Source: Macrostomum lignano (taxonomy: Eukaryota). From it: a stretch of 64,000 bases of DNA. The notes under the pieces were generated by a model. The model did not search any database, was not told the DNA's origin, and saw only the letters and a program-made list of their open reading frames with translations. Shown here in pieces: positions 2,208 through 63,851 of the stretch (position 1 is its first letter; the number at the start of each line of letters is the position of its first letter). Where the stretch lies: contig NIVC01002564.1 of the NCBI GenBank assembly GCA_002269645.1, positions 62,001 to 126,000 on the forward strand, in the 5' to 3' direction. A program made the translations under genes and the position numbers.

Positions 2208-11786
<9,579 letters not shown>

Positions 11787-12586: not shown

Positions 12587-15500
12587 TCAATTCTCAGCCA
12601 ATCCAGCTGATTCCTCGTCATCGTCAGCATCTTGTTGACTAATCAGTTCCTCATGAGAATCCTCATCCGAGCCAGACTCTTCTCCATCAGGCGTAGGCAG
12701 CAGCTCTTCAATATCCTCGTTATCGAAGTCTTCTTCATCAAAGTCGCTCTGTTGAGACGCGTCGCGACTGTTAGACTGTTGCAAACAGGTGGGGCACAGG
12801 TAGGAGTCAGCCAGCTCGTCAACAGAGCGGACTCCAACGCAGATCCAATGGAACCACTGCTGGCATTGATCGCATTCCACCCAGTTCACCTGCATGAGCG
12901 ATAGATTTCTTGTTGTATTTAATAATTCTTAAAGTTGTATTTTAGGAGATCTATAGGTTTTTTAAGGATGAGATTTTGAGAATATAGGTGAGAATTTTTA
13001 GTATAATGGATTTTGAGGATTTAGATACGATTTTGAGGATGTAAGTGAGCTTTGAGGATATACATAGGATTTGGAGGATGTAGGTGGGAGTTGAGGATGT
13101 AGGTGAGATTTTGAGGATGTAGATGGAATTTTGAGGATGTAGGTGAGATTTTGAGGATGTAGGTGAGATTTTGAGGATGTAGGTGAGATTTTGAGGATGT
13201 AGGGGAGATTTTGAGGATCTAGGTGAGATTTTGAGGATCTAGGTGAGATTTTGAGGATGTAGGTGGGATTTTGAGAATGTAGGGGAGATTTTGAGGATCT
13301 AGATCGGATTTTGAGGATGTAGGGGAGAGTTGGAGAATATGGGTGAGATTTTTGAATTTATGGGGACTTTTGAGAATTTAGATGAAATTTTAAAGATATG
13401 GGGGAGATTCTGAGAATCTAGGTGAGATTTTTAAGATTTAGGTCATTTTTTTCAGGATGTAAGCGAGATTTAGTAAATCTATGTAAGATTTAAATCTAAA
13501 CGAGATAGACGGGATATTGGTATCTAGATGCGATAATGATGGCATATGAGATACTACGAGTACGAATTTGCACCTGAGTTCCAGTCGGCTGGTGACACTT
13601 CACCGCTGCGCAGTCCTCGCTCCAGCCGCCTTTTCGACGCTTCTGCTGTTGCTGCTGTTGAGGTCGGGCTTGCTGTCGCTTGGAAGCTGAGGCCGAAGAT
13701 GAAGCCACAGAAGCGGCAGCGGACGAGGCAGCATGAGATGCCGCAGGTTGAGTATAGTGCTTTCTACGCCTCTCGGCTGCCTGCAAGAAGACCGAACAGT
13801 GAATGCTTGATAGAGCCTTAGTAGCTTAGGGATTAGTAGCCTAAGGATCAGTGGCTTAGGGATTAGTAGTTTGGGTATTAGTGGCTTAGGGATCAGTAGC
13901 TTAGGGATTAGTAGCTTAGGGATAAGTAGCTTAGGGATTAGTAGCTTAGGGATTAGTAGCTTAGGGATTAGTAGCTTAGGGATTAGTAGCTTAGGGATTA
14001 GTAGCTTAGGGATTAGTAGCTTAGGGATTAGTAGCTTAGGGATTAGTAGCTTAGAGATTAGTAGCTTAGGGATTAGTAGCTTAGGGATTAGTGGCTTAGG
14101 GATTAGTAGCTTAGGGATTAGTAGCTTAGGGATTAGTAGCTTAGGGATTAGTAGCTTAGGGATTAGTACCGTAAGGATTAGTAGCTTAGGGATTAGTAGC
14201 TTAGGGATTAGTGGCTTAGGGATGAATAGCTTAGAGATTTTTAGATTACGGATTAGTAGCTTAGGGATTAGTAGCTTAGAGCTTTGTAGATTACGGATTA
14301 GTAGCTTTGCTTAGGGATTAGTAAAATAGAGATTAGTAGCTTATGGATTAGTGTCTTAGGTATTAGCAACTCAGGAATTAGTTACCCTAGAATTAGTGGC
14401 TTAGGGAATATTGGCTTCGGGATTAGTAGTTTAGGGATTTGCAGTTTATGCGAGAATTGCTGATATATCAAGGCTTATGGGACGAATTGCTGAGATGACA
14501 GAAAGTGAGGCATTAGCAGCTTAGAGCATAAAACTGTCAGACTCACCGCCTCAATAGGAGTCCGGACTTTGCGCCGACGCTTATCAGCTGGAGCGGCATC
14601 TTTGTCGGCGTCGGCTGAACCAGCCGGTCGCTTAGCAACCGACACCACAGATGAGCTACCAGGTTTGCGACCTCTTCTAGCGTGCTGCCTTTGCTGCTGC
14701 GGCTGCTGCTGCTGAGAAAGTACAAGATGTCCTTTTGTTTGTCGTTTTGCCAATTTTGACTTCGACGACGACGACGCTATAGACGTAGTAGACGCCGCCG
14801 ACGGGAGCATCACGGGGCCGAGAGCGATGGCCGACGTCGAATACGCGTCAGACATGTCGTCGCCATCGTCATCGTCAGCGGCGGAGGCAGCGGCGCCTGC
14901 GGCCGTGGAGGCGACCGCTTTAGCCGAGGACTGCACAGAGGAGGAGTCCATAGCGTCGTCACCTTCGCTGCTGCTCTCTTCGTCGTTGTCATTGTCCTCG
15001 TTGTCGCTGTCAGCTCCTCGGCCGCAGGCAATAAGACCGGCTCCTCTGTCGTCGTCGCCAAACTCATCAACGTCAGCGTCGGGCGCGCTGGCCTGCAGCA
15101 GGTGCCACAGCCAGGTGGACTCCTCCATGGAGACTTCCAATAGGTCGCCTTCGAGCATGGAGGACTCGAGTTGAGACCGGGCCGCCGGGCTCAGAGTCAG
15201 GCGAGGCCTACGGGCCGGCATTAAAGAGGTTGGCGAGGTCATGGAATCGCCGGCGCCGCTTGTCGACATTGTCGGAGGCGGCGAGATGCTCAGGCTGCTG
15301 CTGCCAGGACCAGCTGGGGCGGCAGCCGACGTAGTCGAGGCCGCCGCAGTGTTGCCACCGCCTGATTGCGACGGCCCGCGAGGAAACAGCGGCGACTTTC
15401 GCGGCTTTCTAGACGACGAAGACTGCGCCGCCGCCGCTGCAGCCGCAGCTGCCGATGCCGCCGATGACGAAGTGGCAGCGGCAGCGGCGGCGGCAGCGGC

Positions 15501-18248
15501 AGCCGCATTAGCGGCACCCCGCTCAGCCAGGGTTAGGCCGCTATTAGCGCTAATTGCAGCCACGCTAGAGGCCATAGCAGCCTCGCCACCCGAGGTAACC
15601 ATGGTGTTTAGCTGGCGCAACAGTTTATCAGGCAGCTGCAGTTTCATAGTTCTAGCCAAGCAGACTAGCGCCCGGCGCAACTCGGGACTGCTTAACAATA
15701 GGCAATGGGTCCGATCCTGCCAGGACATCGCACGCTCGGTTAGACACTGCAGAGCCACCCCGGCTAGCAGAGGACACGGTAGGCGTTGCAGAGCCAGCAG
15801 CAAACTGAGAATGGTTTCAACCCGAGGCCGCCTGCCGCGCTCGCAGGCCTGGCACAGATATTTCAGATCCCTGAGAGCGGCCCGCATTGCCGATTGGCCG
15901 GCGTTAGTCAGCGTCTTCGGCTTCAAATACTTGGGCAAAGTGACGCACTGGGCGTGGTACCAGTGCCGGCACAGTTCGCACTGCAGCATGAAGCTGTTGC
16001 TGGAATTGGAGCTGCGCTGACCGCAGATGCACGTGGATGCCAGGACTAGATCGTGGCCTTTGCGGTGTCTGTAAGTATTGCAAATCGATCATCAAATGTC
16101 AGTGATCGATACATCAAGCAACAAATCGATCATAAATATCGTGAATCTATACTGAATATCATAAATCGATACTGGATATCAGAAATCGATACTGAATATC
16201 ATAAATCGATATTGAATATCATAAATCGATATTGAATATCATAAATCGATACTGGATATCATAAATTGATACTATATATATCATAAATCGATACTGAATA
16301 TATAAATAGATACTGGAAATCAGAAATTGATACGAAATATCATAAATCGACAATGAGTATCATTAATCGACATTGGGTATTAAAAATCGATAATTCATAT
16401 CATACATCAATATTGAATATCACAAACCGATACTAAATATAAAAAGTCGTAAAAAGTAATGAACAATTTGACACAAGCATACGAAAAGGCATAAGAATAA
16501 ACTAATACTCTGACTCACCTAGCAGCCATCGCACTTTTCAGTTCTGTAGCGGCCAGCTCCTGATAGAGAGCCACCCTTTCAGCGTCGGTAATATCGTCCG
16601 AGAAACGGTCAACCGGCTCCAAAAAGTTCTGCTGCTGCTGTTGGGCCGACTGACCGCCGTTGCTGCTCTCTTCTTTGGCAGGAGCTTTCTTCGACACCGC
16701 GCCCTTCTTTGGACCGGAGCTCTGCCCGCCTTGACCGGCGTTTGGCTTCGTGTAGTCGCGTAAAAACGAGCGAGACGATCGGGGCAAAAGAACCTGTGCG
16801 TGATGAATTTTTTAGGGAAATTTTGTATGTGCATCTACAGTGGCTGGCCCAGCAACTGACACTCTGGGAGGCTGGCACAGCAACTGACACTCTGGGAGGC
16901 TGGCCCAGCAACTGAGGATCTGGGAGGCTGACACAGCAACTGACACTCTGGGAGGCTGGCCCAACACTGAGGATCTGGGAGGCTGGCCCAGCAACTGAGG
17001 ATGTGGGAGGCTGGCACAGCAACTGAGGATCTGGGAGGCTGGCTTGCTGCTTGAGGATCTGGGAGGCTGGCCCAGCAACTGAGGATCTGGGAGGCTGGCC
17101 CAGCAACTGAGGATCTGGGAGGCTGGCCCAGCAACTGAGGATCTGGGAGGCTGGCCCAGCAACTGAGGATCTGGGAGGCTGGCCCAGCAACTGAGGATCT
17201 GGGAGGCTGGCCTAGCAACTGAGGATCTGAGAGGCTGGCCTAGCAACTGAGGATCTGGGAGGCTGGCCCAGCAACTGAGGATCTGGGAGGCTGGCCTAGC
17301 AACTGAGGATCTGAGAGGCTGGCCTAACAACTGAGGATCTGGGAGGCTGGCCCAGCAACTGACACTCTGGGAGGCTGGCACAGCAACTGACACTCTGGGA
17401 GGCTGGCCCAGCAACTGAGGATGTGGGAGGCTGGCCCAGCAACTGACACTCTGGGAGGCTGGCACAGCAACTGAGGATCTGGGAGGTAAGCCTTAAGAGT
17501 TCCTAGCCTAGCAACCAAGAATCTACAAGAGTTCCCAGCCTAGCAACCAAGGATCTACAAGAGTTCCCAGCCTAGCAACCAAGAATCTACAACAGTCCCC
17601 AGCCTAGCAACTGAGGATCTACAAGAGTTCCCAGCCTAGCAACCAAGGATCTACAAGAGTTCCCAGCCTAGCAACCGAGGATCTACAAGAGTTCCCAGCC
17701 TAGCAAACAAGTATCTACAAGAGGATCTACAAGAGTTCCCAGCCTAGCAACCGAGGATCTACAAGAGTTCCCAGCCTAGCAACGAGGATCTACAAGAGTT
17801 CCCAGCCTAGCAACTGGGGATCTACAAGAGTTCCTAGCCTAGCAACCAAGGATCTACAAGAGTTCCCAGCCTAGCAACTGAGGATGTAGCACTAAAAACT
17901 CAAGCAGGCGTACCTGTATAAGCGACAGAGGAGAGTACTTCTTTAGAAAGTTCCGGGCAGTCCGATCTAGCCAGCCCTTAGCTTGGGCCACGTGATTTTC
18001 TAGCTCCGCCAGCTGCTCCAGCTTCACGCAATACTTGCGACCCTCATCTAGCAGTCGCTCCAGCGTTCCCAGAGTCGGATAGGCTACCGCGCTACCCTGC
18101 CCAGTTTCCATAGCAACCGTCTCTGACCATTGTCGAATTCGAGCTAACAGATCGGCGGCTGATTTCACCGAAGTCAAACGAAGCGGCAGTCGCTCGGCGT
18201 CGTCAACCAGTTTTTGCAGATCGTCAAGGTCCAGTAGGGAGGCCTGCA

Positions 18249-18285
<37 letters not shown>

Positions 18286-21200
18286 CGAACTAGAAGAAGA
18301 AGACTGCTGCTGCTGCTGCTGGCGCTGCATCTTTTGCAGCCGTTGACGTGTCTCCAGGCAGTTGCGTGCTCTGCGTGTACAGAGAAATGACTGGGATTTG
18401 TAAATTTTCAATTGTTAGGTAGAGACTAAGGTGTTCCAGAGTAGGGTGTTACAGGTGTTAGGAGTAGGTGTTAGACACTATGGTAAGAGACTATTTAAAA
18501 ATAAAATAATTATTATTAGATGCTTAGAGATAGCTTTATATGCTGTTTATAAGTAGCTTTAGAATTTTTTAAAATGTTAATCTCTAAGCTGTTTAAGGGT
18601 GGGTTTAGAGACTGTTTATAAGTAAGATTAAAAGATGTTCATGAGTAGGTTAATAAGCTAAAAGTGTGTTTAGGTTCACAGATGCATATGAGTAGGTTTA
18701 CAGGATGTTTATGAGTAGGTTTACAGGATGTTTGTGAGTAGGTTTACAGGTTGTTTATGAGTAGGTTTACAGGATGTTTATGAGTAGGTTTACAGGATGA
18801 TTATGAGTGGTTGTACAGTATGTTTATAAAAAGGTTTACATGATGTTTATGAGTTAGTTTACAGAATGTTTATGAGTAGGTTTACAGGATGTTTATAAGT
18901 CGGCTAACAGGATGTTTATAAGCAGGTTTACAGGGTGTTTAAAAACGGCTGCACAGGATGTTTATGAACAGGTTTCCAGACTGTTTTTGGGTAGACTAAT
19001 AGGTTAAGGGTGTGTTTATAGGCTGCTTTATGAGTAGGTTTAGAAGATGTTTATGAGTAGATTAGTTGGATAATGGTGTGTTTATAGGCTGTTTATTATC
19101 GATAGGTTAGATGAGTATAAAACCTGTGTAAAAATCAGCTGTTTATGAATACGTTTACAAGACTGTTTAGAAGGCTTTTTATTTAAAAAAGAACCCACGA
19201 GTATAATGTACCAGAATGGTTGCAAAACTACACAAAATTACAACTTACTTAGCCTCCAAATCCTGACCGGTTCTCAGCAAATTCAACAGCCCTGCCAGAG
19301 CTGCTTCTGACTTAGACGTCTGCTCTCGCAGCGATGAACCTTTGGCGCATAACTGCGACAACTCGCTTGGAAACAGCTTTCTTCTATTAGTAGAAGACTT
19401 CTTAACAGTAGATTTCTCTTCGCCATCATCTTGCTCTTTGTTATCAACTTCGAGTTCGTTTAAAATCGATTGAGCCTCGGTTAAAAACAGCTGACGCTCG
19501 TACACAGCGGCTAGCCAGGGCCAAGCGTCCATAGCAACCGGCAGTCGACTAGCCGCTTCGGTTGCTAAGGAAGCTACGATGTCAAAATCCGGTTCCACGC
19601 TAGGATCGGCTTCGAAGTTCTGCATCAGAGCCTGGCAACGGGAGCGCCAACTGTCGACCTGAGTTCGAAGACCGGCAAAACCGGATTCCTCATGGTCCGA
19701 CAGTCGACACGGCAGCCGGTCTAACCGGCGACACACGGCGACAAAGCTGGCCTCGTCGATTTTGTTGACGCATCGGCCGACCCGGCCGCCGCATCTGGGA
19801 AACCGCAGCCGTTTGCGCAGCTGGCGAACTCGAACTGTTTCGCTAGGCGACCCCTCGTCGGAGTCTTCCTGCTCCGCTTCGATTGGTTCGTCTTCTTTTT
19901 TAATAGCAACAGTAGGCGACTCTTTCTCTTCGACAATTTCTTCTTCGGCAATGTCTTCTTTAACGAAAGAAGATGATGCGGTGGCAGCAACAGTGGAGGC
20001 TGCCGCGGCAGTCAGCAGGGCGCTGACAACTTGTTGGGCTCGCCGACAGGAACGCACCCGATTGCGTAACCGAGCCAAAGGTGCGCAACTAACCGGGGAC
20101 AGGTGCAATTCGGCAACCCCGCGCCAGGCTAGCAACTCAAGCTCGGATAGTTCCGGCTTATTATCATTGTCAGACTCTTCCGAATGCCCATTGTCCGGCT
20201 TCTTAGCTATGCTAGATTTCCTACTGATAGAATCTACCGTAGATCGCCACTCATTGTACTGATCGCGTAGGGAGATTAGTTGAATTCGAGATTGACTGAG
20301 CAAATCGTTTTGCGCAACTGCGGCTTCTGTTTGTTGTTGTTGTTGCTGTTGTTCATCAGAGCTCGACTTTAGCAGAGACTGTGGATTGATCATAGATTAT
20401 ACAGTATGAGCGCAGATGCGTTCACAATACTTTCTTGTGTCTAAAACAATACTATTTGAGTCTGTAGTACAGCCTTAGAGAATATATCGGTTGAGTCTGA
20501 AGGATTAATTTTGTCCAGACAGGATTGGTTGTGTACAGAGATGAGTCATTGTGTTAAGAGAAGACTGGTTGTGTCCAGTATAATTGGTTGTGTCCAGAGA
20601 TAATTAGTTGTGTCCAGATATAATTAGTTGTGTCCAGAGAAGATTAGTTGTGTCCAGAGATAATTAGTTGTGTCCAGAGAAGATTAGTTGTGTCCAGAGA
20701 TAATTAGTTCTGTCCAAAGAAAATTAGTTGTGTCCAGAGATAATTAGTTGTGTCCAGATATAATTAGTTGTGTCCAGAGATAATTAGTTGTGTTTAGAGA
20801 TAATTAGTTGTGTCCAGATATAATTAGTTGTGTCCAGAGAAGATTAGTTGTGTCCAGAGATAATTAGTTGTGTCCAGAGATAATTAGTTGTGTCCAGAGA
20901 TAATTAGTTGTGTCCAGAGATAATTAGTTGTGTCCAGAGATAATTAGTTGTGTCCAGATATAATTAGTTGTGTCCAGATATAATTAGTTGTGTCCAGATA
21001 TAATTAGTTGTGTCCAGAGAAGATTAGTTGTGTCCAGAGATAATTAGTTCTGTCCAAAGAAAATTAGTTGTGTCCAGAGAAAATTAGTTGTGTCCAGAGA
21101 TAATTAGTTGTGTCCAGAGATAATTAGTTGTGTCCAGAGATAATTAGTTGTGTCCAGAGATAATTAGTTGTGTCCAGAGATAATTAGTTGTGTCCAGAGA

Positions 21201-23875
21201 TAATTAGTTGTGTCCAGAGATAATTAGTTGTGTCCAGAGAAGATTAGTTGTGTCCAGAGATAATTAGTTCTGTCCAAAGAAAATTAGTTGTGTCCAGAGA
21301 TAATTAGTTGTGTCCAGATATAATTAGTTGTGTCCAGAGATAATTAGTTGTGTTTAGAGATAATTAGTTGTGTCCAGATATAATTAGTTGTGTCCAGAGA
21401 AGATTAGTTGTGTCCAGAGATAATTAGTTGTGTCCAGATATAATTAGTTGTGTCCAGAGATAATTAGTTGTGTCCAGATATAATTAGTTGTGTCCAGAGA
21501 AGATTAGTTGTGTCCAGAGATAATTAGTTCTGTCCAAAGAAAATTAGTTGTGTCCAGAGAAAATTAGTTGTGTCCAGAGATAATTAGTTGTGTCCAGAGA
21601 TAATTAGTTGTGTCCAGAGATAATTAGTTGTGTCCAGAGATAATTAGTTGTGTCCAGAGATAATTAGTTGTGTCCAGAGATAATTAGTTGTGTCCAGAGA
21701 TAATTAGTTGTGTCCAGAGATAATTAGTTGTGTCCAGAGAAGATTAGTTGTGTCCAGAGATAATTAGTTGTGTCCAGATATAATTAGTTGTGTCCAGAGA
21801 TAATTAGTTGTGTCCAGATATAATTAGTTGTGTCCAGAGATAATTAGTTGTGTCCAGAGATAATTAGTTGTGTCCGGAGATAATTAGTTGTGTCCAGATA
21901 TAATTAGTTGTGTCCAGAGATAATTAGTTGTGTCCATATATAATTAGTTGTGTCCAGAGATAATTAGTTGTGTCCAGAGATAATTAGTTGTGTCCAGAGA
22001 TAATTAATTGTGTCCAGAGAATATTAGTTGTGTCCAAAGAAAATTAGTTGTGTCCAAAGAAAATTAGTTGTGTCCAGAGATAATTAGTTGTGTCCAGAGA
22101 AGATTAGTTGTGTCCAGAGATAATTAGTTGTGTCCAGAGAAGATTAGTTGTGTCCAGAGATAATTAGTTGTGTCCAGAGAAGATTAGTTGTGTCCAGAGA
22201 TAATTAGTTGTGTCCAGAGATAAATTAATTGTGTCCAGAGAAGCTTGGTTGTGTCGAAAAAAAAGATCGGTTGTATCCAGATAAGAATAGTTGTGTCCAG
22301 AGAACAGTTGTCGATAAAATAAAGCGCCTGTAACTTGAAAATGAAACACCCCCAACCCAACCCTAATCTCTCACCTCAATCTCATTGAGTAGCAACTCAG
22401 CTAGATCAGCAGACAGCAACAGTCGTGTCTGTTGCTGCTGTCTCGATGCATTATTAACTTCAACAGTAGCTAAAGACTCCTCAACCACAGCTTGAGCTGC
22501 TTCTAGCACAGCCCTACGCCGAACTTCTTGAGGCATGCCAGCAGTCAGAGCTCCCGGCAGCCAGTTGAATGGACAAAACCGAGCCAATTCTAAAAAATTA
22601 ACGCCGCAGTCAAGCCAAGCATACCTGGCGCCAGGCATCAGCACAACAAACTCGCCAGGTCTTTGTTCTAGACGCCATCCAACATTTCCATTGTCATTGG
22701 AAGCCAGACAATACCAAATCCTGGCCTCACCCCAGTGCAGGTAGGACACTGAGCCTGACCAGTCACACTGCCAGGCACCGGCTCCATTGCCAGTTGAAGA
22801 CAAAAATCTTGAACCGATTTGACAGCGCCACCAGTCATTTGGCGACTCAGTGCTTGCAATATTGATAACGCCTGAACAGTCAGATAAACTGTTGGCTAGT
22901 TCCCAGCCGTCTTCTTCTACTAGAGGCAATTGCTTGCCGTACTCAACTGTTGAAGATGAAGACGCTAAAAATGAGGAACACCAATATGCTTTTTCACTCA
23001 GTTTTTCTATTTACATAGTATTCATGTTTTAAGAATGAATACTGCACCATTCCTTCAGATCCTTCAGGTGAGCTAGTGCACCTTCCCATTCCTTCCCGAT
23101 CCTTCATGTGAGCTAGTGCACCTTCCCATTCCTTCAAGATCCTTCAGGTGAGCTAGTGCACCTTCCCATTCCTTCCAGATCCTTCAGGTGAGCTAGTGCA
23201 CCTTCCCATTCCTTCCAGATCCTTCAGGTGAGCTAGTGCACCTTCCCATTCCTTCCAGATCCTTCAGGTGAGCTAGTGCACCTTCCCATTCCTTCCAGAT
23301 CCTTCAGGTGAGGTAGTGCACCTTCCCATTCCTTCCAGATCCTTCAGGTGAGCTAGTGCACCTTCCTTCCAAATCCTTCAGATGGGCTAGTGCAATATTA
23401 TTCCATAATGACACACTAGAGTCCTATTCGCTTCAGATGTAGTAAACTTACCCGACTCAAAGCGGCTCCAGAACTCAGCCTCAACAGCTGCAGGTGTCAT
23501 GGAAAACTGCGCACACTCAGTTGCCTCATTGCGGGCAACAAACTCAGCCAGATGGCATTCTGCAGCCAGGCCTGGTAAATCATTACCACCAATTTTTTGC
23601 CTAGTAGGACAAAATTTAAACAAATCAATGTCCAAACAGAATGGCAGCAGACATCCGCTGAAGTTGGGTTCAACCTCACTATTCTCAAAATTAGAGGATG
23701 CTACTGATTTTTGTTCAGGTGGACACAGCTTGCATATCAGACATCCAGTATCCAATGCAGACAGTTTCTGTTTAACAATTTCAGTTACATAACCAGCTAG
23801 GTCATCCAAATCATCTGGTGTGGCAATGAAAACTGGAGCGATATTCAGCTTTGATAAGCGAGCAGAGAAACTCAT
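12587..23875 (-). CDS. KDM5/lid (JARID1)-family protein, ~1635 aa, 8 coding exons: JmjN, degenerate JmjC, PLU-1, PHD2, PHD3
   Basis: Exons 23875-23452, 22964-22375, 20378-19249, 18370-17914, 16793-16519, 16068-14547, 13780-13574 and 12889-12587 join in phase. Motifs [11 protein letters not shown] (JmjN), [98 protein letters not shown] and [25 protein letters not shown] match remembered KDM5 sequence. Confidence 0.9.
12980..13460. repeat. 20-bp minisatellite (TTGAGGATGTAGGTGAGATT)n
   Basis: Direct reading; last KDM5-like intron. Confidence 0.92.
13818..14450. repeat. 15-bp minisatellite (GCTTAGGGATTAGTA)n
   Basis: Direct reading; KDM5-like intron 6. Confidence 0.95.
16100..16440. repeat. 20-bp minisatellite (ATCGATACTGAATATCATAA)n
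   Basis: Period 20; KDM5-like intron 5. Confidence 0.88.
16842..17890. repeat. Two abutting related arrays: 28-mer (GGCTGGCCCAGCAACTGAGGATCTGGGA)n, then 32-mer (CCCAGCCTAGCAACCAAGGATCTACAAGAGTT)n
   Basis: Periods 28 (17053/17081) and 32 (17521/17553); shared AGCAAC..AGGATCT core. Together they fill intron 4. Confidence 0.93.
18685..19150. repeat. 23-bp minisatellite (GAGTAGGTTTACAGGATGTTTAT)n, degenerate at the edges
   Basis: Period 23 (18691/18714); intron 3. Confidence 0.85.
20565..22310. repeat. 20-bp minisatellite (GATAATTAGTTGTGTCCAGA)n, ~1.7 kb, with higher-order duplications
   Basis: Period 20; variant blocks repeat at 20681/21241 and 21021/21501. Intron 2. Confidence 0.97.
23045..23385. 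repeat. 40-bp minisatellite (CCTTCAGGTGAGCTAGTGCACCTTCCCATTCCTTCCAGAT)n
   Basis: Period 40, ~8 copies; intron 1. Confidence 0.95.
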
Positions 23876-30486: not shown

Positions 30487-33400
30487 ATGTTGTACAGTTT
30501 CTGGTGCAACCTAAGTAGCACCAGAACGGCTTTGCTGTCAATTAATGTTGCCTTTCTTCTAGCCGGCATCGCTTTGAAAGTCGCCATTCAGTTGACAATC
30601 AACACGCCGGTGGTGTCCAAGATCAACCTGCTGGATTCGTTGGACGCGTGTTCGAATGCTCTGATTCCGATATCGATTGTTGGTTTCGCTGGTGCCTGGA
30701 TGAAGAATCACACTGTACTGTTTATGTACCTGTTGTGTACATTCCCTCTCTGTCTAATTCAGTTCTCAGTCTCATGCAGCTGTTTGGCAGCCGACTCGAA
30801 TCAGATCAAAACCATTATTGAGGCCGGCTGGAATCGGGCCGGCGATGCGAAGCGAGCAGAGGCTCAGGTAAATTCGCATTAAATGAAACTTTGATGGCCT
30901 GTGATTTTTTGAAGTGCATCACAAGGACAACTAAAGCAGCGTATATACAGGACGGGACACTCACGTTTCATGGGAAAAAGTTTTGAAGGCCACTTTTCGT
31001 CGAAAAATACACTACGGAGATAGGAAGTTTTCATTTTTCCAGCACAAGAACTGTTATTGCTTTCGATCGGAGGCAGACCCAATTTTCATATTTTGATTTG
31101 TCGATATGTTTTTTTTATTAGAGGCAGGGGGTTGTGTGCACCCTGGCGCACTTTAAGCGACATAGGCACACAACCGGCGAGAGGCATTACTGCCCATTCC
31201 GCCGACTCCCCTGAGCAGGCATACAAGCGCGCGGATACGTACGCAAGCACACACTCACACAGGAGTGTACAGCGGCCCTAACTTTATTTTATCGTTAGGC
31301 ATGTACACTTCACTGCGCCTTGGGGGGTTGGCTCTGAAGGCCGTTAATTGCACGAGCAGAGCCAAGCCGAGATTCCAATTCAGCCCCAAATTAATGTGAC
31401 TGCACTTGGAATCGAGCCTGGGCCGCTGGCACACCAGAGACTGCGCTAGACCGCTGGGCTACGGCCCCCTTTTGTCGATATGTTGTTTTGATATTAATTT
31501 TTTATTCTACGCACATTTTCTGTACCTAAAAATCATAAAAGAGCATGGCACAGCTCGAATCTTTGGTTTTATGAATCTATTTTATCATATCTGTTACACA
31601 TATATTTTTACACAGTCAGCAGCTGAGAATGACAAAATAGATTCATAAAACCAATGAGCTGGGCCGTGCCATTTTAATGGTTTTTAGGCACAGGACATGC
31701 TATTGTACGTAGAATAAGAAAATAATCGTAATTTTCTAAACAAAAGGCTTTATGAATATCAATAAAGCTAGAAAAAAGGCACAACATATCAAAAGATGAA
31801 CACTGGGTCTGCCTCCTATCGAAAGCAATAACAGTTTTTGTGCTGAAAAACTGATAACTTCCTATCTCCGTAGTGTATTTTTCGGCGAAAATTGGCCTTC
31901 AAGATATTTTCCAAACATTTCAAGTGTTGCATCCTTATACTTTAGTAGTCCTTGGTGCATCACCGAAACAAGAACTACATGTATTTTGTTAAAAGTTTAG
32001 TAAAAATTATGGTTTGTTGATGTTCTCGACTTAATTTGCATTCAACCGTCGAAGACATGCGCGCGCACTTGTCGGCGCTTCGGCAACTCCGTCACTCCGT
32101 CTTTCGTCAGTTCCTGAAGCGCGCCCCCTACGACGCTATAACATTACCAGCTCCATTGTTTCTTTCCAAACTTTCGAAACGAACCTCAATAATATACACT
32201 CTTCATTGCGGATCCCGCCCCTTGAGATTGCGATCCCTGGCAAAGCAACCATGACAAGAGAAGGCGTTGGTGACCGCCTTGATCTCCCTCCGGTTAAGTC
32301 TAAGTCATCATTTTTTCAGATCTCTGTCCGAAGTGACGCAATTTTCTGGCGTGGAGAGAGTGGAGATTTATGGCCTAGAGATCGGGATTATTAAAGCTTC
32401 CCTATGTTTTCCACTGCGTGTTTCGGAGTGGAATTATTCTACTTTTTGTTGAGTGTATTTTATATCGCTTTTAATATAGCATTTTGCAGCCCATTTGGGC
32501 TTACGCGCATTGAATTTAATCCAAGATATGTTTGTCAAAGTAATGGAGCTTTTGTCTATGGCAGCAAGGCTGGCGCAGCGGCATTTAATTTGGTCCAACA
32601 AGCATCCATTTGGTCCAAACACTCGTGAGCCATTGGACAAACTCCTGCCTTCTCGCAACAGTCTGCAGGTTGTTGCGCACCGCTGGAATGTCAGCGTCTC
32701 TACCAAAAATTTTCAGTTGCTTTTCCAGAGCTCTGCTGATAGTCGAAATCTGATAACCAACTGGAGCTGTTCCCTCAACTTCTGCTGCATTTTCTGAAAC
32801 GTCAACAAAGGGTTCGTCTCCACTGCATCGAGTAGCAGTTGGACCTGAGGCTCTCGAGCAACTTTCCTTGGCGATTGCCACCCTTTCGCAGGCAATCTCT
32901 GCCGGCAGAGTTTCAAGGCGCTCCTGGATGCTGTAAACCACCTTTTCTTTTACATTCAGCAACCTTGCAATGTCCTTTGGGTGTTCACCTCCGTCGAGTG
33001 CTTCGATCACAAGCCAATGACATTCGTTCAACAGCCTAGCATACGGTCCACAATTCTGGGACTGAGCTGCAAATGAACTAAATGGACCAAATTGATGCTT
33101 GTTGGACCAAATTAAATGCCGCTGTGCCAGCCTTGCTGCCATAGACAAAAGCTCCATTACTTTGACAAACATATCTTGGATTAAATTCAATGCGCGTAAG
33201 CCCAAATGGGCTGCAAAAAGCTATATATAGTGAATCTAAGCAAAATAGTTATTAATATTCAGTGCTTTCACTTTACTCAACAGTAGCATGATACGAGTGG
33301 TATGCGCGTGAGACGCAACACAAAACAATTCTTCGAATCAAATTTTGCAGACAAAATACAAATGCTGCGGCCTGTACCATTCCGGGTACGTCAGCGATCC

Positions 33401-47837: not shown

Positions 47838-63851
<16,014 letters not shown>

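Follow-up and report, generated by a model that had tools for sequence, protein, structure and literature searches.

We describe here a KDM5-like gene of the flatworm Macrostomum lignano, found on contig NIVC01002564.1 of assembly GCA_002269645.1. The stretch of DNA that was analyzed, called the window below, corresponds to positions 62,001 to 126,000 of the forward strand of this contig and is 64,000 nucleotides long. All coordinates are positions within this 64-kb window. The gene lies on the minus strand, at 23875..12587. It encodes a protein related to the KDM5/JARID1/Lid histone demethylases, in which the catalytic site of the JmjC domain is destroyed and the PLU-1, PHD2, and PHD3 modules are retained.

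Gene Structure

The gene is made up of eight exons separated by seven GT-AG introns. The spliced coding sequence has 4908 nucleotides (1635 codons) and its sole stop codon is the terminal one. An open frame of about 1635 codons in eight exons had been proposed by an earlier, sequence-only reading of this DNA; the model obtained here agrees with it, with GT-AG borders throughout and only a terminal stop. The two other frames of the same spliced sequence contain 63 and 119 stops, as compared to none internally in the main frame, and the stop density in the introns is 0.057 per codon. Hence, the open frame is not a composition effect.

Exon 1 (23875-23452, amino acids (aa) 1-141) carries the start codon and a degenerate JmjN (aa 13-55 and 76-95), followed directly by the pre-JmjC linker, with no ARID or PHD1 in between. 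Exon 2 (22964-22375, aa 142-338), the interval to which the earlier reading had drawn attention, encodes a JmjC remnant and a degenerate C-helical segment. Between exons 1 and 2 and between exons 2 and 3, the splice sites follow the consensus and are in phase. Exon 3 (20378-19249, aa 339-714) contains an RYRYTLxEL-NEW remnant, an acidic insert, and the N-terminal portion of PLU-1. Exon 4 (18370-17914, aa 715-867) encodes a poly-Q/S run (18327-18244) and the C-terminal portion of PLU-1 (57 bits in Pfam), and exon 5 (16793-16519, aa 868-958) corresponds to a linker. Exon 6 (16068-14547, aa 959-1466) encodes PHD2 (16031-15843), the post-PHD2 helical block (15842-15609), a low-complexity region, and a C-terminal motif (15212-15078). 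Finally, exon 7 (13780-13574, aa 1467-1535) encodes a basic, poly-Q linker and the first two Cys of PHD3, and exon 8 (12889-12587, aa 1536-1635 and the stop codon) the remainder of PHD3 down to 12785, with both aromatic-cage Trp, and an acidic tail.

Public protein models of the locus are fragmentary. Residues 1-344 match UniRef entry A0A1I8H220 of M. lignano at 98%, and the C-terminal part is identical to A0A1I8HTA7 except for predicted splicing differences. The models A0A1I8H220, A0A1I8H5U3, A0A1I8I596, A0A1I8H2K0, and A0A1I8HTA7 split the locus into N- and C-terminal proteins. The N-terminal one, named “JmjC domain-containing protein,” reads through intron 2 to a stop (“...NEIEVRD”), the C-terminal one is named “PHD-type domain-containing protein,” and exons 3-4, which encode PLU-1, are absent from every returned public model. 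The locus is thus effectively mis-annotated. Two public fragment models (P0008 and P0009) reproduce the exon 5/6 and 7/8 junctions, and their departures from the eight-exon model come from the use of other GT-AG pairs within the locus. The returned records contain no GenBank (PAA) protein of the Mlig_3_7 annotation for this gene. This absence was rejected as a sign of lack of expression; it is uninformative because the annotation excluded transcripts overlapping repeats (PMC5730564) and every intron of the gene holds a minisatellite.

Loss of the Catalytic Site in the JmjC Domain

The protein was aligned using MAFFT with 20 other KDM5s, a sample that covers M. lignano, arthropods, vertebrates (fish), a sponge, and a chytrid fungus. 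All 20 have, without exception, the H-x-E motif, the YSINYLHWGE Asn, the EPKTWY Lys, and the PRAYH distal His. In KDM5A, H-x-E...H are the Fe(II) ligands, and Asn, Lys, and a Tyr contact 2-oxoglutarate. In the protein encoded in the window, the region of the H-x-E motif reads A205-W206-Q207-C208-D209 (22776-22762, minus strand), with A205-W206-Q207 at 22776-22768. The distal His is replaced by Y256 within PGARY (22623-22621), the Asn by S213, and the Lys by R223 (EARIWY), and Q190 takes the position of the Tyr in the WxYVGM strand. The Ala-Trp-Gln and Tyr replacements, their positions, and the changes of N493 to Ser and K501 to Arg (human KDM5A numbering) are those of the sequence-only reading.

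That reading had further claimed the loss of all three iron ligands, which depends in part on the alignment register. Without gaps, the His of the motif corresponds to A205 and the Glu to Q207. In the MAFFT register, where a two-residue gap keeps the conserved Trp aligned, the His corresponds to Q207 and the Glu to D209. Both His ligands are therefore gone whichever register is used, and the survival of an acidic ligand is register-dependent.

The alignment also reveals that 37 residues are absent between WYCLASND and NGNVGW (deletion junction SND/NGN at 22701-22684), in good agreement with an earlier estimate of about 40. In other KDM5s, this segment holds LLHQLVTIMNP. The Pfam JmjC profile matches the protein only at positions 77-111 of 114, that is, in its last third. 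Some fold motifs are still present in the N-terminal module (YLHWGE, GEFV, NF.E..RFC, and WLP), and an AlphaFold2 model of this module is uninformative (mean confidence, pLDDT, of 29.9). The Fe(II)/2-oxoglutarate site is destroyed, having lost both His, the Asn, and the Lys as well as a 37-residue segment of the JmjC core, and the predicted product cannot be a conventional demethylase. All four known M. lignano copies of the N-terminal module carry the dead site. Codon 205 (22774-22776) specifies Ala in the window and in copies P0006 and P0007, and Val in copy P0005. This variation at the former His position (ungapped register) is consistent with no remaining constraint there.

Domain Losses Outside the JmjC Domain

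The catalytic lesion had been described as lying in an otherwise intact gene, and this part of the earlier description has to be abandoned. In the whole protein, Pfam identifies PLU-1 (PF08429, 75.4 bits for a gathering cutoff of 28.5, aa 550-866) and two PHD stretches (PF00628). It detects no JmjN (E<=0.1), ARID, KDM5 C-helical domain, or zf-C5HC2. A tblastn search of the whole window (word size 2, E up to 5-10) was also made with four queries, namely KDM5A of a crayfish, KDM5B of a carp, and the two intact M. lignano paralogs described below. The matches are collinear and correspond to JmjN (weakly), the C-terminal part of JmjC, PLU-1, PHD2, the C-terminal motif, and PHD3. With these four queries, ARID, PHD1, and the zinc finger have no match anywhere in the 64 kb, and a single JmjC-like segment is found, with no second one.

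Similarity to JmjN is weak and collinear only (E=2.4e-4 in tblastn with crayfish JmjN; a phmmer stretch at aa 78-155; no Pfam match). In exon 1, the tail of JmjN runs straight into the pre-JmjC linker, without ARID or PHD1. The C-helical domain gives no match with crayfish KDM5A or with the closest paralog in these searches, and its remnant is faint and visible only in an alignment with the M. lignano sister gene. No Cys is present between C272 and C435, and consequently there is no C5HC2 zinc finger. ARID, PHD1, and the C5HC2 finger are thus deleted.

The site of the natural ARID-PHD1 deletion (23591-23482 / 22964-22936, aa 76-151) coincides with the junction where JmjN and JmjC were fused in KDM5B and KDM5A for crystallization. 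In these delta-ARID-PHD1 constructs (5A1F, 6EK6, 5E6H), as in the present protein, JmjN is joined directly to the pre-JmjC linker, and phmmer aligns aa 78-155 without gaps across the engineered junction of the KDM5B constructs. In contrast to the present protein, however, the constructs are active enzymes, with JmjC and the zinc finger intact.

Conservation of the PLU-1, PHD2, and PHD3 Half

The C-terminal half presents a different picture. All eight Zn ligands are kept in PHD2 and all eight in PHD3 (16 in total). In PHD3, VNW...QQWFH aligns to VDW...NQWFH of KDM5B PHD3 and both cage Trp are kept; their assignment to an aromatic cage follows the KDM5A PHD3 and BPTF structures. The best PDB matches of this PHD3 are KDM5B PHD3 (2MA5, E=1.3e-12), the BPTF PHD (2FUI), and KDM5A PHD3 (2KGG/3GL6). 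In the post-PHD2 block, a stretch of 15 residues is identical to the crayfish sequence.

Identities to crayfish KDM5A were compared for the gene of the window and for its intact M. lignano sister, Mlig012680. They amount, respectively, to 39 and 35% in the C-terminal part of PLU-1, 30 and 34% in PHD2, 53 and 45% in the post-PHD2 block, 40 and 42% in the C-terminal motif, and 49 and 46% in PHD3, vs. 34 and 61% in JmjC. On these identities, the C-terminal half has evolved no faster than in the intact sister. The histone-reading modules are well conserved, and the earlier reading had said as much of the PLU-1 and PHD regions. The PLU-1 score of 75 bits, the presence of PHD2 and PHD3, and the collinear match to crayfish KDM5A support the view that the gene derives from KDM5 and not from JARID2.

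Two Intact Paralogs and the Origin of the Gene

A phmmer search with the N-terminal module against 1.84 billion representative sequences returned its own cluster (784 bits), then nothing above 56 bits. Hence, that collection contains no close relative of this module from any species but M. lignano. Its best non-self match, a weak one, is M. lignano Mlig015885 (PAA72229.1). The latter protein has JmjN, ARID, PHD1, a JmjC domain of 144 bits with HxE...H, the C-helical domain, the zinc finger, and PLU-1. PHD2 and PHD3 are absent from the protein and from its two genomic loci, including 10 kb downstream. At these loci (L001 10001-16994 and L002 10001-17758 of GCA_002269645.1), the post-PHD2 helical block and the C-terminal motif are kept. 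Mlig012680 (PAA67014.1, UniRef A0A1I8HHV5) has the complete canonical KDM5 architecture. Both intact lineages have a full JmjC domain (144-145 bits) with HxE...H, so that the gene of the window is indeed a paralog, as had been proposed, in a genome with two catalytically intact KDM5 lineages.

The three KDM5 genes of M. lignano therefore each have a domain set of their own, and other surveyed spiralians have one KDM5 or none (PMC12153100). The modules lost in Mlig015885, PHD2 and PHD3, are exactly those kept by the gene of the window. A clean reciprocal split between these two genes was considered and is weakened by the existence of the third, complete gene, Mlig012680.

Neighbor-joining trees were built on 882 and 1019 columns with 300 bootstraps; they are distance-based only, with no other flatworm identifiable in the sample and with Msc1 and Ecm5 not included. 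The gene of the window pairs as sister with Mlig012680 (100%) within a clade of the three M. lignano KDM5s (100%), with the chytrid KDM5 as outgroup. Root-to-tip distances are 2.65 for the gene and 1.77 for its sister. Long-branch attraction does not explain the grouping because the long branch joins a conspecific sequence and not the outgroup. Identity to Mlig012680 ranges from 22 to 76% depending on the region and reaches 55-76% in PHD2, the post-PHD2 block, the C-terminal motif, and PHD3. Moreover, introns 2 and 4 match introns of the sister (after aa 666 and aa 1127) in column and phase, and the duplication therefore occurred at the DNA level and not by retroposition. These data support an independent origin of the gene within the Macrostomum/flatworm lineage, and the sister position at 100% bootstrap upholds what had been suggested on this point. 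We found no prior description of the gene in literature searches on KDM5 in Macrostomum and flatworms.

Introns and Minisatellites

Introns 1, 3, 5, 6, and 7 (23451-22965, 19248-18371, 16518-16069, 14546-13781, and 13573-12890, minus strand) are absent at the homologous positions of both paralogs, by comparison with loci L003 and L001. Their donors are consensus (GTAAGT twice, GTGAGT twice), and at all four testable junctions they excise seamlessly with respect to the sister protein. We read them as real introns, which suggests a burst of five intron gains in the lineage of the gene, or parallel loss in the two other paralogs. An origin from transposable elements or introners was considered; no dispersed copies and no common termini were found in about 157 kb, which is too little sequence to exclude it.

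Each intron (12890-23451) holds its own unrelated minisatellite (40 bp x8, 20 bp x90, 23 bp x17, 28 bp x23 and 32 bp, 20 bp x16, 15 bp x41, and 20 bp x23). Intron 2 is 2 kb long, and its 20-bp array takes up 90% of it. Of all these units, only the 15-bp one of intron 6 is found again at another place in the window, at 9929-10528; the intervals 11228-11574 and 7800-8700 were recorded along with these repeats. Tandem repeats represent about 15% of the M. lignano genome (PMC5730564), and a minisatellite in every intron may be ordinary for this species.

Constraint Between Recent Copies

Selection was also considered at a more recent scale, from amino acid differences between copies of the gene, calibrated on the synonymous divergence (dS) of copies of the intact paralogs and with copy pairs assumed to be of equal age. 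The copies of the two intact paralogs have dS values of 0.0154 and 0.0135, with omega (dN/dS) values of 0.12 and 0.31. In the gene of the window, the PHD2 block (aa 911-1155) shows 0/245 changes between copies vs. 13/370 in the remaining aligned residues (p=0.002). In contrast, 8-10 of the 338 residues of the JmjN/JmjC remnant (aa 1-338) differ, for about 11 expected neutrally, which is significantly more than in the intact paralog (p=0.002 and 0.0002). Taken with the relative rates and the retained reader residues, these data indicate that the half carrying PLU-1, PHD2, and PHD3 is under purifying selection, with the catalytic half a probable vestige kept in frame.

A Probable Non-catalytic Reader or Scaffold

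We favor, with moderate confidence, the view that the gene is a lineage-specific duplicate of a canonical M. lignano KDM5 that became non-catalytic and whose product acts as a reader or scaffold. Its most likely function would be that of a non-catalytic H3K4me3 reader or scaffold. The product would dock on H3K4me3 via PHD3, with PLU-1 and PHD2 contacting partners. Since it would have no demethylation activity, no H3K4me0-binding PHD1, and no DNA-binding ARID, it could either compete with the two active paralogs at H3K4me3-marked chromatin or carry a demethylase-independent scaffolding role. The JmjN/JmjC stretch would stay in frame mainly as a vestige upstream of the constrained half. Non-catalytic KDM5 roles and a competing inactive isoform, KDM5B-NTT, are documented (PMC11241480), and the competition model would amount to a hard-wired version of the latter.

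Several points weigh against this view. H3K4me3 binding by PHD3 is predicted from conserved residues only. The argument for recent selection uses amino acid differences calibrated on other genes and assumes equal ages of the copy pairs. The only models available are fragmented, ab initio-style UniProt entries, and no ortholog was found outside M. lignano among the 1.84 billion representatives searched by phmmer. Finally, the five putative introns that are not shared with the paralogs are unusual.

These points bear in part on the possibility that the locus is an unprocessed pseudogene, its open frame and apparent introns resulting from its recency and from the choice of GT/AG pairs around repeat insertions. 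Five introns absent from both intact paralogs, a minisatellite in every intron, an N-terminal module changing between copies at about the neutral rate, the missing transcript-based GenBank model, and the redundancy of a neopolyploid genome (PMC5730564) would all fit such a scenario. However, the divergence of the gene from its sister is deep, and yet its 1635 codons contain no internal stop, vs. 63-119 off-frame. A pseudogene would also be accelerated everywhere, whereas the C-terminal modules are not accelerated relative to the intact sister, 16 of 16 PHD Zn ligands are kept, and the PHD2 block is invariant between copies. In addition, the introns have consensus donors, excise seamlessly wherever this can be tested, and are not dispersed repeats in the about 157 kb compared. 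We therefore judge a pseudogene unlikely. The near-neutral change in aa 1-338 would also fit a functional product restricted to PLU-1, PHD2, and PHD3 and arising through an internal start or spliced-leader trans-splicing, with the JmjN/JmjC exons untranslated or dispensable. Indeed, 38.8% of M. lignano genes are trans-spliced (PMC5730564) and the public models do split the locus into an N- and a C-terminal gene. On the other hand, the 338 N-terminal codons have acquired no stop at about 65% divergence from the sister, although the off-frame density predicts 13-25 of them, the fold motifs of the N-terminal module are kept, and the splice sites joining exons 1, 2, and 3 are consensus and in phase. 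Such a truncated product is improbable in our opinion.

Two other explanations concern the catalytic domain itself. The protein might still be an enzyme, with an unconventional metal site (Gln207/Asp209/Tyr256 in the gapped register) and a hydroxylation or other reaction; the MAFFT register does leave an Asp at the acidic position, and a hydroxylase suggestion was once made for Msc1/Epe1 (PMC2770259). However, the protein has substitutions at both His, at the 2-oxoglutarate-binding Lys and Asn, and at the Tyr of WxYVGM, it has lost 37 core residues and the zinc finger, and its former His position varies between Ala and Val in a region that changes near-neutrally, so that this explanation is close to excluded. 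As for an artefact of the gene model, in which an unrecognized exon would supply an intact JmjC, ARID, PHD1, or zinc finger, the 2-kb intron 2 and the fragmentary public models leave some room for it. Yet 90% of intron 2 is minisatellite, the exon junctions align seamlessly to homologs, and the tblastn search of the window yields one JmjC-like segment and none of the three other domains. Such an artefact is very improbable.

The non-catalytic reader or scaffold can be extended, more tentatively, to a partition of KDM5 functions between a complete enzyme (Mlig012680), an enzyme without PHD2 and PHD3 (Mlig015885), and the reader-only gene. The latter would be genetically hard-wired to antagonize or protect H3K4me3, competing with the active paralogs at promoters, and a burst of five intron gains would have taken place in its lineage. 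We regard this extended version as doubtful.

Relationships With Known KDM5-Related Proteins

With canonical KDM5/JARID1/Lid proteins, of which Mlig012680 is the nearest, the protein shares collinear JmjC, PLU-1, PHD2, C-terminal motif, and PHD3, with a weak collinear similarity in JmjN, and the gene shares two introns with Mlig012680. It differs from them by the lack of ARID, PHD1, the C5HC2 finger, both JmjC His ligands, the Asn, the Lys, and 37 core residues, by JmjN and C-helical domains that fall below Pfam detection, and by five extra introns.

JARID2 is likewise a KDM5-related JmjN/JmjC protein with substituted catalytic residues and non-catalytic chromatin roles (PMC11241480). However, unlike the present protein, it keeps ARID and zf-C5HC2 and has neither PLU-1 nor PHD fingers (PMC11241480), and it interacts with PRC2 through an N-terminal region. 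In PDB searches, the protein matches JARID2 with E=0.002 vs. KDM5B with E=8e-12. JARID2 had been named as the usual catalytically dead relative, but it is not the only one. Indeed, Schizosaccharomyces pombe Msc1, a member of the Lid/Jarid1 family with PLU-1 and three PHDs, also lacks key catalytic residues (PMC2770259). Msc1 is a stoichiometric subunit of Swr1C and a proposed chromatin reader (PMC2770259, PMC2614481). Saccharomyces cerevisiae Ecm5, described as its closest homolog, is, among the JmjC proteins of budding yeast, the only one for which no demethylase activity has been shown (PMC8329514). The present protein resembles both by its PLU-1 and C-terminal PHD fingers and by a JmjC domain not expected to demethylate. 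In contrast, Msc1 retains JmjN, zf-C5HC2, and three PHDs, and its lineage is fungal. The gene of the window is not orthologous to Msc1 or Ecm5: it nests among the M. lignano KDM5s, with a fungal KDM5 as outgroup, in an alignment that leaves Msc1 and Ecm5 outside. There is no sign in this analysis of a Swr1/H2A.Z link.

Inactive forms also arise from active KDM5 genes. KDM5B-NTT and delta-ARID KDM5B are inactive through N-terminal loss and keep their PHD fingers. H3K4me3 increases with KDM5B-NTT, for which competition with the active isoform has been proposed, and delta-ARID mice are viable, unlike knock-outs (PMC11241480). These are, however, isoforms or engineered alleles of an active gene, whereas the case described here is a separate gene with fixed inactivity and a long history of its own.

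Dead proteins of the JARID family are thus already known, and the present one is an independent, lineage-specific, animal case with different retained domains. It adds an animal example to the short list of JARID-family pseudo-enzymes (JARID2, Msc1, and Ecm5), and its retained domains are opposite to those of JARID2. It is actively being asked which roles of KDM5 depend on demethylation and which require the protein alone. On this point, demethylase-dead flies and delta-ARID mice are viable and inhibitors fail to block some KDM5 effects in cancer (PMC11241480). If our reading is true, selection maintains only the PLU-1/PHD2/PHD3 half of this gene, and the gene would then represent a separation-of-function allele of natural origin. 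M. lignano offers transgenesis, RNA interference, and regeneration, as well as two catalytically intact paralogs for comparison. As an annotation and as an evolutionary finding, the catalytically dead KDM5 predicted here is solid, and it is so far confined to one neopolyploid species.

Neighboring Features of the Window

Three other features were recorded in the window. On the plus strand, an open reading frame at 41775-42317 matches the C-terminal part of the TauD/TfdA family of 2-oxoglutarate dioxygenases (PF02668, 33 bits for a gathering cutoff of 27) and probably belongs, as an exon, to an unrelated gene nearby. On the minus strand, sub-threshold Pfam matches correspond to a nuclear-hormone-receptor ligand-binding domain at 49171-50316 (19 bits) and to a winged helix-turn-helix, HTH_29, at 32585-33205 (22 bits), the latter possibly related to a transposase.

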